From the sequence record NC_055733.1: 64,000 nt of DNA; one strand, given 5' to 3'. Every line of letters starts with the position of its first letter. Position 1 is the first letter of the stretch. The notes beneath the pieces are model-generated. The model saw only the letters and a program-made list of their open reading frames with translations. It did no database searches and was not told the DNA's origin. Of this stretch, positions 22,478 to 45,048 are shown piece by piece. The translations under genes and the position numbers were made by a program.

Positions 22478-24090
22478 ATGTCTAAGAAATCTCTCCTGAA
22501 AAAATGGCAGCCGCTGGTAGAAAGTGAAGGTATGCCTGCTATTGCTTCTATGAAGCGTAAGGATATCGTCGCTCGTATCTTCGAAAACCAGGACGAAGAT
22601 ATTGCACATAACGAAGGTGGTGTGTATACTGATCAGGTAGTTGTTAACTCCATGATCGACGTTAAAGGTCGTATCAACGAAGCTAAAGAAAAAGCACTGG
22701 CAGAAGCAACATCGGCGGTGATCACGGCTACGATGCTGCTAAGATTGCATCTGGTGAAACTACTGGTTCTATCACCAACGTTGGTCCTGCTGTTATGGGT
22801 CTGGTGCGTCGCGCTATTCCGCAACTGATTGCGTTTGATATTTGCGGTGTTCAGCCAATGACTAGCTCTACCGGTCAAGTGTTTACTCTGCGTGCCATTT
22901 ACGGCGGCAACTCTCAAGACGCTAGCGCTCGCGAAGCTTTCCACCCGACTTTCGGCCCAGACGCTGATTTCTCCGGTCGTGGCGCTGCTCAAGATATCGC
23001 TGAGTTTGCCCGTGGTAATACATTCGCTACCGGCGCGTTCGCTAAACTGCACATCGAAGCTGCTACCGGTGTTCAAGCTGGTACCAAGACTGTTCAGTTT
23101 ATCAAGGACTATACTATCGACGCTCTGCCTGCCGATCAAGTTGAAGCCGGTCTGGCTTACAAGTGGCTACTGGCTAACGGTTACGCTGTAGAAACAAGCT
23201 CTGCAATGGCTACCGCTTTTGCTGAACTGCAACAAGGTTTCAACGGTTCTACCGATAACGAGTGGAACGAAATGTCCTTCCGTATTGACAAGCAAGTTGT
23301 TGAAGCTAAATCTCGCCAACTGAAAGCTCAATACTCTATCGAAATGGCACAAGACCTGCGCGCGGTTCACGGTCTGGACGCTGACAGCGAACTGTCTAGC
23401 ATTCTGGCTAATGAAATCATGCACGAAATCAACCGTGAAATGGTTCTGTGGATTAACGCTACTGCTAAAGTAGGTAAGACTGGTTGGACTAACATGCACG
23501 GCGGTAAAGCTGGTGTGTTCGACTTCCAAGACACCAAAGATATTCGTGGTGCTCGTTGGGCTGGTGAAAGCTACAAAGCTCTGGTAGTTCAGATCGACAA
23601 AGAAGCTAACGAAATCGCCCGTCAAACCGGTCGCGGTCAAGGTAACTTCATCATCTGTTCACGTAACGTTGCCGCTGCTCTGGGTCACACCGACATGCTG
23701 GTTACCCCGGCTGCTCTGGGTGCTAACACCACTATGAACACCGACACCACTTCTAGCCTGTTCGCTGGTGTTCTGGCTGGTAAGTATCGTGTGTATATCG
23801 ATCAGTACGCTGTTGAAGATTACTTCACCGTGGGTTACAAAGGCGCTTCTGAAATGGATGCTGGCCTGTACTACTGCCCATACGTTGCGCTGACTCCGCT
23901 GCGTGGTACCGATCCTAAGAACTTCCAACCTGTTCTGGGCTTCAAGACTCGTTACGGTGTTAAACTGCACCCGATGGCTGACGCTACCCAGAATAAAGGG
24001 TTCGCTAAGATCAGCAACGGTATGCCGCAACACACCAACATGTTCGGTAAGAATGCGTTCTTCCGTCGTGTACTGGTAGCTGGTGTTTAA
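22478..24090 (+). CDS. 23: Major capsid protein gp23 (1-nt deletion near 22708)
   Basis: Adding one A gives AEANIGGDHGYDAAKIASG, continuous with GLVRRAIPQLIAFDICGVQPM. Confidence 0.97.
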
Positions 24091-43751: not shown

Positions 43752-44183
43752 TCACTTACCGCGACGAACTTTCTTTTTGGTAACCGGTGATTGAGTTTCT
43801 GCACCAGTCGGACGCGGAGCGTGACGCTTGAACTTGAACTCGGTACGCTGGGTTTCGGCATCAACGATGCGATTTTGCTTGCCAAGTACCAGAGATTCGG
43901 TATCTTTCACGTACTTGTATACGCGCTCGGCTTTGCGTACCAGACGAGTCAGAGCAACGTCCAGACGAGATTCTTGTGCGCCTTTCTTCGGGTTCTTAGG
44001 ACCAGCATAGCCCCAACGAGAAGACTTAGCGGGAACCTTTTTCAGTGCTGCCTTAGCAGCTTCATCTTGCGGGTTAGCGGCAACATGACGCTCGATATCC
44101 CGGGTCTTGTTTTTCACAAACAGACCAGCGGTTTTGTAGGTTGCGAAGTGACCCTTGCCACGAGAAGATTTTTTACCAGCCAT
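43752..44183 (-). CDS. Highly basic hypothetical protein
   Basis: K/R-rich, AAGGA RBS, biased codons, followed by a terminator. Confidence 0.75.
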   Translation of the reverse strand: MAGKKSSRGKGHFATYKTAGLFVKNKTRDIERHVAANPQDEAAKAALKKVPAKSSRWGYAGPKNPKKGAQESRLDVALTRLVRKAERVYKYVKDTESLVLGKQNRIVDAETQRTEFKFKRHAPRPTGAETQSPVTKKKVRRGK

Positions 44184-44343
44184 TTTGAATTTCCTTTTGT
44201 ATAGATTCGATTAGTTGTTTAACACCGTCATCACTGAATTCAGTTTCGATGTTTTCGACGTCTAGTGTCCAACTAGCCGTAAGCTTTCTAGGTTTAGCGT
44301 TAACAACGACTCGTTCGACTCTGAATGTCAGTGATTGATCAGT
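44173..44343 (-). other. 56-codon gp23-like open frame directly after the rIII stop, with no ATG/GTG/TTG
   Basis: TDQSLTFRVERVVVNAKPRKLTASWTLD... aligns with gp23 MSFRIDKQVVEAKSRQLKAQYSIE. Confidence 0.55.
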
Positions 44344-44628
44344 TCAGGATTTGAAGTAGTCTTTCAGTTCGGTAGTGATACCGCGAACAACAGTGCTATC
44401 CAGTTCTTTAGCGAAACGCAGACCGTATCCTTGTTCCATGTCCCATTGGTTGATGTATTCTACCAGTTCAACGGCTTTCTTGTTCTTGGGAAGAGCGGAA
44501 GCAACTTCCAGAGCATAAGCCAGAACGTCGATAGACGCGCCTTGATTTTCGTGACCGGCATTCCATGCTTGACGTTGAGCAACAACACCACCACGTACCA
44601 GAGTTTCAGCAAAAGTTTTTACAGACAT
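44344..44628 (-). CDS. rIII: Lysis inhibition accessory protein RIII
   Basis: QRQAWNAGHENQGASIDVLAYALEV matches T4 QRNAWNNGHENYGASIDVEAEALE. Confidence 0.88.
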   Translation of the reverse strand: MSVKTFAETLVRGGVVAQRQAWNAGHENQGASIDVLAYALEVASALPKNKKAVELVEYINQWDMEQGYGLRFAKELDSTVVRGITTELKDYFKS

Positions 44629-44637
44629 TTTATTTCC

Positions 44638-45048
44638 TTAACGATTCAGAAGAGTAAGAGAAGATGTGAACGGTTGCTCACTTTGTTCTACGGGTTTGCC
44701 TTGTGGCTTACCATCATAGATTGTACGAATGCCTTTGTAATGCATAGTCACGAAAATTCGTGCTTCTGTGCTGTTACGCGGGATAAGCCCGTAGGCCATT
44801 CGCGGGTCAGGTACGTTACTGTAAATCCCACCACCTTGCGGCAGCGCAACGTCCTTTCCAATCAACTCTTTGATACTTTCTGGACAGTTTTCACCAACAG
44901 AAACGACAGTTCCATACAAAGGAATGTCACCTTGATTTCTAACACCGAGAATCAATCCGGCATCAGATTTCAGTTCCTCACCCTTTCGGGCTGCATTACA
45001 TTCGAGAACAACTTGTTCGTCAAATGCTCTAAAACCTAATTCACTCAT
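44638..45048 (-). CDS. 31: GroES-like co-chaperonin gp31
   Basis: RAFDEQVVL, GLILG, GTVVSVGE, NVPDP, HYKGI. Confidence 0.9.
   Translation of the reverse strand: MSELGFRAFDEQVVLECNAARKGEELKSDAGLILGVRNQGDIPLYGTVVSVGENCPESIKELIGKDVALPQGGGIYSNVPDPRMAYGLIPRNSTEARIFVTMHYKGIRTIYDGKPQGKPVEQSEQPFTSSLTLLNR

Follow-up and report, generated by a model that had tools for sequence, protein, structure and literature searches.

A capsid-protein-like open frame behind rIII in Aeromonas phage Ah1 and its relatives: a candidate restarted mini-gene

The open frame behind rIII

Aeromonas phage Ah1 (Straboviridae, Cinqassovirus) carries, immediately behind the lysis-inhibition gene rIII, an unannotated frame that stays open past the rIII stop codon and resembles a segment of the T4-type major capsid protein gp23. 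The DNA studied, hereafter the window, is a stretch of 64,000 nucleotides (nt) corresponding to positions 124001–188000 of MG250483; coordinates are those of the window unless stated otherwise. The rIII gene (44344..44628, minus strand; 94 residues) encodes a lysis-inhibition accessory protein, as assigned from a match to PHROG 1457 (E = 4e-27), from the Pfam family Linr3 on an identical product and from the name rIII in all related records. Its product ends in ...DYFKS, followed by TGA at 44344–44346. Our reading of the minus strand agrees with a preliminary description of the locus in that the rIII frame then remains open for 56 codons (44176..44343, minus strand), or 52 counted from a CTG, up to a TAA stop at 44173–44175, with no in-frame ATG, GTG or TTG; the near-cognate codons in frame are CTG (codon 5), ACG (22), ATC (32 and 45), ATA (48) and ATT (52).

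Gene order on the minus strand is cd, two small genes, gene 31, rIII, a gap of 160 nt that the frame fills entirely, and a gene for a basic protein of 143 residues. The proximity of the frame to gene 31, also remarked on previously, is borne out: gp31 (44638..45048, minus strand), named from the annotation of related records as the GroEL co-chaperonin for gp23 folding, is encoded directly upstream of rIII. On the other side, the gene for the basic protein (43752..44183, minus strand; PHROG 18475, with a weak match to DUF7022) has an ATG at 44181–44183 that overlaps the end of the frame, and a ribosome-binding site of its own, AAGGAAA, at 44190–44196. The frame is new to public annotation: none of the annotated related GenBank records examined marks it, and the AsFcp_1 record carries no annotation of any kind. 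Openness by itself is weak evidence, as at least 56 open codons follow the stop in 26 of 298 gene-like open reading frames (ORFs) of Ah1 (9%), nearly all by running into the next gene; what raises the frame above chance is its conservation in relatives together with its resemblance to capsid protein.

Five alleles were compared: those of Ah1 and avDM12, that of the PX29/AsFcp group (PX29 and three AsFcp phages, with identical sequence in four further metagenome contigs), that of the Ah1-like Logan contig L021, and that of Aeh1. This comparison divides the frame into segments. Four codons, T-D-Q-S (44332..44343, minus strand), separate the rIII stop from the CTG; they would serve as a linker in the event of a restart at codon 5, or as the opening residues of an extension in the event of read-through. 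The fourth of these codons specifies S, A or E depending on the allele, and Aeh1 has an in-frame indel here. Codon 5, the proposed start (44329..44331, minus strand), is CTG in Ah1, avDM12 and the PX29 group and ATG in L021 and in the wastewater contig X4. Residues 5–29 (44257..44331, minus strand) match the return strand of the capsid E-loop and a P-domain strand according to Pfam, PHROG, hhalign and BLASTP, and contain an invariant A-K-P-R-K...W-T motif. Residues 38–53 (44185..44232, minus strand) are predicted by AlphaFold2 (AF2) to form an amphipathic helix, which in alignment falls at the start of the capsid spine helix and coincides with the helix of three of the homologs described below (L044, L043 and P0003).

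Likeness to the major capsid protein

Against the Pfam family PF07068 (Gp23), the frame scored 16.3 bits (E = 0.0066; profile positions 134–158), below the curated cut-off of 24.4 bits; the ORF of the ATG-started L021 allele (P0012) scored 15.4 bits, and genome scans returned 14.9–16 bits. A comparable match was obtained to PHROG 138, the major head protein (E = 0.0064). The nine identities in 24 positions previously counted against a stretch of Ah1 gp23 proved exact on recounting, and BLASTP of the frame against the gp23 and gp24 of Ah1 itself gave non-significant values (E = 1.7–10). A profile built from three alleles and run with hmmsearch against all 3602 stop-to-stop ORFs of Ah1 placed gp23 first after the frame itself (E = 0.048), and hhalign against gp23 and gp24 of the phage clade gave P = 2.3e-4, with residues 263–288 of gp23 aligned.

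Searches outside the clade were stronger. The three-allele profile found six matches among 1.8 billion proteins (E = 3e-5 to 4e-4), five of them small proteins of 51–145 residues (P0002–P0006), and three of these (P0003, P0005 and P0006) exceed the Pfam Gp23 cut-off over the same region of the profile as the frame. A scan of IMG/VR added two full-length Gp23-family capsid proteins, L044 (494 residues; 197 bits) and L043 (579 residues; 265 bits), to which BLASTP gave E = 2e-7, aligning residues 10–54 and 5–52 of the frame, respectively. These alignments indicate that the frame is homologous, over the aligned segment, to bona fide members of the Gp23 family. The copied segment runs from the return strand of the E-loop through the P-domain strand that follows to the opening turns of the spine helix, and covers only positions 134–169 of the 376 in the Gp23 profile. 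A complete HK97-type fold, with N-arm, E-loop, P and A domains, is not present; AF2 modeling of the frame alone gave low confidence (mean predicted local distance difference test score, pLDDT, 68.6), with helix 38–53 as its sole element and no sheet.

A recent duplication of the gp23 or gp24 of Ah1 was considered as a source and rejected, given the non-significant BLASTP values against these proteins and an identity of 9 in 24 that is no higher than that to foreign capsids. Because foreign capsids and small proteins match the frame better than Ah1 gp23 does, it is best regarded as an old, separately evolving fragment; by these sequence comparisons its putative lineage is one of older small capsid-fragment genes, found also in uncultured large phages. 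Thus, of the likeness to gp23 originally noticed, the homology to capsid protein stands and is supported by profile comparison, whereas the notion of a copy of the phage's own gp23 does not stand. The gp23 gene used for comparison (22478..24090, plus strand) is itself split in the Ah1 record by a 1-nt deletion near 22707 and annotated as 23_1 and 23_2; relative to Aeh1 and PX29, in which the frame is unbroken (534–539 residues), one base is missing. Because the capsid gene is essential, we take the split to be most likely a sequencing error.

Start codons among the alleles

The codon at position 5 provides the clearest indication of how the frame might be expressed. In X4 it is ATG (44331 G>T on the plus strand), and L021, whose flanks are 98–99% identical to Ah1 and avDM12, has ATG at the same place through the same C-to-A change. 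In L021 the frame is therefore a canonical ORF of 52 codons (P0012) that starts 12 nt past the rIII stop. Stand-alone homologs begin within about three codons of codon 5, and an uncultured phage encodes an ATG-started protein of 114 residues that consists of the strand and helix only. Together, the ATG allele and the N-termini of the homologs favor, at the level of sequence, a putative independent small gene beginning at codon 5. The ATG of L021 belongs to a short divergent patch that spans the 3' end of rIII and codons 1–10 of the frame; it thus represents an allele of a different lineage, not an isolated point mutation.

These observations bear on the three routes of expression put forward in the preliminary description, namely read-through of the rIII stop, a CTG start, and an ATG lost through a 2-nt sequencing error. 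The CTG route gains most of the three, as the anticipated ATG-started relative exists in L021 and X4 with its start at exactly this codon; CTG itself, lacking a Shine–Dalgarno sequence, remains a poor start. The sequencing-error explanation fails: the same start-less sequence occurs in avDM12, PX29, the three AsFcp phages and four metagenome contigs, and contigs from three metagenome studies retain the TGA. Two low-depth metagenome contigs show single-base indels in the region, at window positions 44176 and 44194. X4 has an extra A in the A-run before the ribosome-binding site of the next gene, which would alter the last six codons of the frame, and in X6 a base is missing from codon 3 of that gene; given their depth of 4–7x, both may be assembly errors.

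Conservation of the frame

In all five alleles the reading frame of rIII stays open through this segment, and the rIII stop is TGA followed by A. All alleles retain 157–160 nt in otherwise tightly packed genomes, and every indel is in frame. The surrounding DNA is a recombination mosaic (43900–44460; 2140–2590 of L001). Ah1 and Aeh1 are about 97% identical in gene 31 and rIII, but their identity falls to 65–80% over a divergent patch of about 360 nt that reaches from the spacer 170 nt into the next gene. Ah1 and PX29 are 90–97% identical over a block of about 270 nt that takes in the last third of rIII and the spacer, against 73–86% outside it. Because of this mosaic, Aeh1 offers the only deep comparison. 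Relative to Ah1 it has 37–38 differences in about 160 nt, no stop codon and an in-frame indel, with changes at the three codon positions numbering 13, 6 and 19 and a ratio of nonsynonymous to synonymous substitution rates (dN/dS) of 0.35–0.42, compared with 0.10–0.27 in the flanking genes. When the Aeh1 substitutions were permuted, the absence of a stop together with at least the observed amino-acid identity had P = 0.02–0.04, and as few second-position changes had P = 0.01; the other two reading frames contain 3–10 stops. The Aeh1 comparison thus lends moderate support to a probable protein-level constraint on the frame.

A search of IMG/VR for further alleles found none beyond known isolates, and the single match in a scan of Joint Genome Institute (JGI) metagenomes was false, being a coiled-coil protein. 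The gene neighboring the frame in Aeh1 is on record in Aeh1 only. At the equivalent position in T4, a gap of 244 nt after rIII (2042–2285 of L040) is interrupted by many stops in phase with rIII and contains no capsid-like frame, and T4 gp30.9 gave no match to Gp23.

Other capsid-fragment genes

The frame is not the only separate piece of capsid protein in Ah1. Outside the window, an ORF of 129 residues (PHROG 12830; genome positions 97025–97414, minus strand, equivalent to 1636–2025 of L008) scores 25.5 bits against Gp23, its C-terminal part matching profile positions 5–41 above the cut-off. It lies in a tRNA cluster, between the genes for tRNA-Trp and tRNA-Cys and adjoining a GIY-YIG endonuclease gene, and is conserved in Aeh1 (ORF176c, described in GenBank as 'similar to T4 gp23'), PX29 and phiAS5. 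A TAG closes this ORF in Ah1, and the Gp23 match seen in the genome-wide scan extends beyond that stop.

In metagenomes, at least 72 clusters of phage proteins of 84–175 residues share a Trp-rich C-terminal module; this unnamed family is exemplified by L017, L018, L066 and L067, with proteins P0002–P0080. Ahead of this module the capsid-derived pieces vary: some clusters have the G-V-Q-P-M region, some the A-K-x-R-K-L...W-T strand together with the spine-helix motif, and some a piece that matches another capsid family. Two capsid-fragment genes can share one contig, and uncultured large phages carry several beside the real capsid gene. The AF2 model of P0006 (mean pLDDT 75) has a confidently predicted C-terminal domain and a disordered capsid-like N-terminus, and Foldseek found no match for it in the PDB at E ≤ 0.001 (best 0.9). 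No cultured-phage homolog was found for one type-A member, and P0003 is a singleton. Our literature search found no publication on capsid-fragment proteins or decoys of this sort, and none of relevance on Aeh1 rIII.

Interpretation of the frame

Taken together, these comparisons lead us to prefer, tentatively and at slightly less than an even chance, the view that the frame is a real, unannotated mini-gene, started at CUG or AUG by ribosomes leaving rIII and weakly translated. Ribosomes ending rIII at UGA would remain on an A-rich message lacking a Shine–Dalgarno sequence and begin again at codon 5 (CUG in Ah1, AUG in one wild allele), 12 nt farther on. Because no Shine–Dalgarno sequence precedes codon 5, ribosomes just released from rIII would be the likely source of initiation, and because this codon is CUG, Ah1 would yield little peptide. 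Termination would then fall within the region where the next gene starts. The weakest step comes last: the peptide would mimic its capsid segment toward a normal partner of that segment, candidates being a second gp23 subunit while the capsid protein folds or assembles, or a host protein that senses capsid. Mimicry is suggested as the mode of action because the lone peptide is predicted to consist of a flexible strand segment and one helix.

Several observations weigh against such a mini-gene. No Shine–Dalgarno sequence lies upstream of the CTG at codon 5, and CUG is a very poor start codon in bacteria. The ATG of L021 lies in a divergent, recombined patch and is compatible with either ATG or CTG as the ancestral codon. 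The gene caller behind the collection searched called no gene at this place, even for the ATG allele. PhiAS5 and phiWae14 do without the frame, having a spacer of 82 nt instead and an rIII that ends in TAA (the spacer, at 2257–2338 of L005 for phiAS5 and in L014 for phiWae14, contains a perfect 8-bp hairpin). The coding-type constraint comes from one deep comparison with modest P values. Among close alleles, Ah1 and PX29 differ within the frame by eight nonsynonymous and two synonymous changes (dN/dS about 1.1), and all four changes between Ah1 and avDM12 are nonsynonymous, a pattern that fits drift without selection or the rapid change usual in accessory genes and is the one expected of an untranslated relic.

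The relic explanation, which we consider unlikely but deserving of serious attention, holds that a formerly functional, ATG-started small capsid-fragment gene is now drifting, its start having disappeared from the Ah1/PX29 and Aeh1 lineages; too little time would have elapsed for stops or deletions to build up. The dN/dS of about 1 among close alleles agrees with it, as do the absence of a canonical start from four of the five alleles, the lack of the C-terminal module that most type-B homologs possess, and the ability of phiAS5 to manage without the frame; moreover, the frame stays open in 32–33% of simulated neutral divergences from Ah1 to Aeh1, and the 94% identity of the spacer between Ah1 and PX29, against 80–86% in flanking genes, may reflect recent exchange and not constraint. 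Decay of this kind would nevertheless require that the start was lost at least twice, or was absent in the ancestor, in which case the coding-like pattern of Aeh1 arose without a start. It must also accommodate indels that are all in frame and the retention of the full 157–160 nt in tightly packed genomes, and drift would place an ATG at the exact domain boundary with a chance of only about 3% (a rough estimate from about 15 substitutions, with one suitable change among about 480 single changes). A different possibility, that the spacer is a cis-acting element (an RNA structure, promoter, terminator or recombination site) in which the open frame is incidental, appears very improbable to us. 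The synonymous divergence of the spacer between Ah1 and PX29 is lower than that of the flanking genes (dS 0.058, versus 0.62–0.71) and a long-range stem can be drawn in Ah1, but the predicted fold is no better than that of shuffled sequences (z = −1.46), the covariation term of RNAalifold is unfavorable, and one compensatory pair stands against many pairs broken in Aeh1. The spacer has no Rfam match and no promoter or terminator consensus, and such an element would leave the capsid homology and the codon-position pattern unaccounted for.

Read-through of the rIII stop, in which a few percent of ribosomes would decode UGA as Trp to give an RIII isoform of 151 residues with a capsid-like tail, seems to us improbable. 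In its favor, the frame is in phase with rIII in all alleles, every indel located between the stop and the conserved core has a length divisible by three, most alleles lack a canonical start, and the stop is TGA-A in each of the five alleles, whereas in phiAS5, a phage without the frame, rIII ends with TAA. Little can be read into the common TGA, because TGA ends 36% of Ah1 genes and the 3' end of rIII is conserved by descent. The tRNA complement of Ah1 provides a further point: its tRNA-Trp(CCA) (genome positions 96561–96635, minus strand; outside the window) has U11:A24 and an unpaired C27/C43 atop the anticodon stem, features linked to UGA reading, since the G24A (Hirsh) change and release of the 27:43 pair are both reported to raise UGA reading by the tRNA-Trp of E. 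coli (PMC13092985). The tRNA-Trp of Aeh1, PX29 and phiAS5 has C11:G24 and G27.U43 and so neither feature, though Aeh1 and PX29 possess the frame; this tRNA therefore cannot explain the frame across the clade. None of the 23 phage tRNAs has the UCA anticodon of a suppressor, and the Ah1 genome gives no sign of another genetic code. Selenocysteine insertion or a known RNA element was rejected: Rfam returned no match at E up to 10, whether to a selenocysteine insertion sequence (SECIS) or to anything else, and no conserved structure was found downstream. The searches found no relative that has rIII joined to the frame with no stop in between, and the ATG allele and the N-termini of the stand-alone homologs point to an independent start. 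Nothing specific thus appears to support UGA read-through.

What the frame signifies depends on which of these accounts holds. If the peptide is made, annotation of this phage group has missed a gene for want of a normal start, and the locus would supply a compact case of non-AUG restart or read-through in a T4-like phage; if the frame is a relic, it represents ordinary gene decay in a recombination hot spot. More broadly, pieces of capsid protein recur as separate small genes in many large phages: the search found at least 72 protein clusters, Ah1 has two such genes, and uncultured jumbo phages have several. Bacterial defenses often sense capsid proteins. Because they do, and because the folding of gp23 needs the product of the neighboring gene 31, capsid fragments are reasonable candidates for counter-defense or assembly control; a decoy or assembly-modulating role for this particular peptide is purely conjectural. 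It is conceivable, if doubtful, that large phages with Gp23-type capsids routinely encode 'capsid mimics', small proteins whose flexible N-terminus presents a short capsid piece (the G-V-Q-P-M region, the E-loop return strand plus spine helix, or others), often attached to a shared Trp-rich domain, and that these form an undescribed functional class of sensor decoys or of regulators or poisons of capsid folding and assembly. Were this so, the 129-residue ORF and the frame would be the two examples in Ah1, and the alternation of CUG and AUG behind rIII would act as a dosage switch for one of them.

Comparison with known systems

The homology of the frame to T4-type gp23 (PF07068, HK97 fold) takes in the return strand of the E-loop, one strand of the P domain and the beginning of the spine helix; it amounts to only 25–48 of more than 500 residues, and the frame cannot form a capsid subunit. 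With the capsid-triggered defenses of the CapRel type and of Lit/Gol, to which the preliminary description had appealed, the likeness is one of idea only, in that a free piece of capsid protein could occupy the sensor. The Gol peptide lies more N-terminally in gp23; the copied segment is not the region that activates Lit, and a Lit-type decoy is on that account not specifically supported.

Among small proteins, the type-B group (P0006, P0013, P0002 and relatives, recorded as 'hypothetical protein' and located among the small genes of large phages) comes closest, sharing the N-terminal strand with A-K-x-R-K-L...W-T and the helix with E-I-D-x-E-I. Unlike the Ah1 frame, these proteins have an ATG start, and in most of them about 60 further residues make up a conserved, Trp-rich C-terminal module, which begins near the point where the Ah1 frame stops; the 114-residue protein mentioned above is an exception. 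Aeh1 ORF176c (PHROG 12830) is likewise a small capsid-fragment gene of the same phages. It differs from the frame in containing another piece of the capsid protein (profile positions 5–44, ...G-V-Q-P-M), in starting with ATG, in being annotated and in its location in the tRNA cluster.

Two known modes of expression offer parallels. The A1 protein of phage Q-beta is a read-through product of the coat gene, made through a leaky UGA, and the Ah1 locus resembles it in that an ORF follows the UGA-A stop of a small gene directly and in the same frame. It is set apart by the ATG allele and by the lack of a stimulatory element in our searches. In the operons of T4-like and other phages, translationally coupled genes restart after termination. 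Although the putative start of the frame is CUG in most alleles, which is unusual for such genes, it resembles them in the distance of 12 nt from stop to start, in having no Shine–Dalgarno sequence of its own, and in an end that overlaps the start of the next gene.

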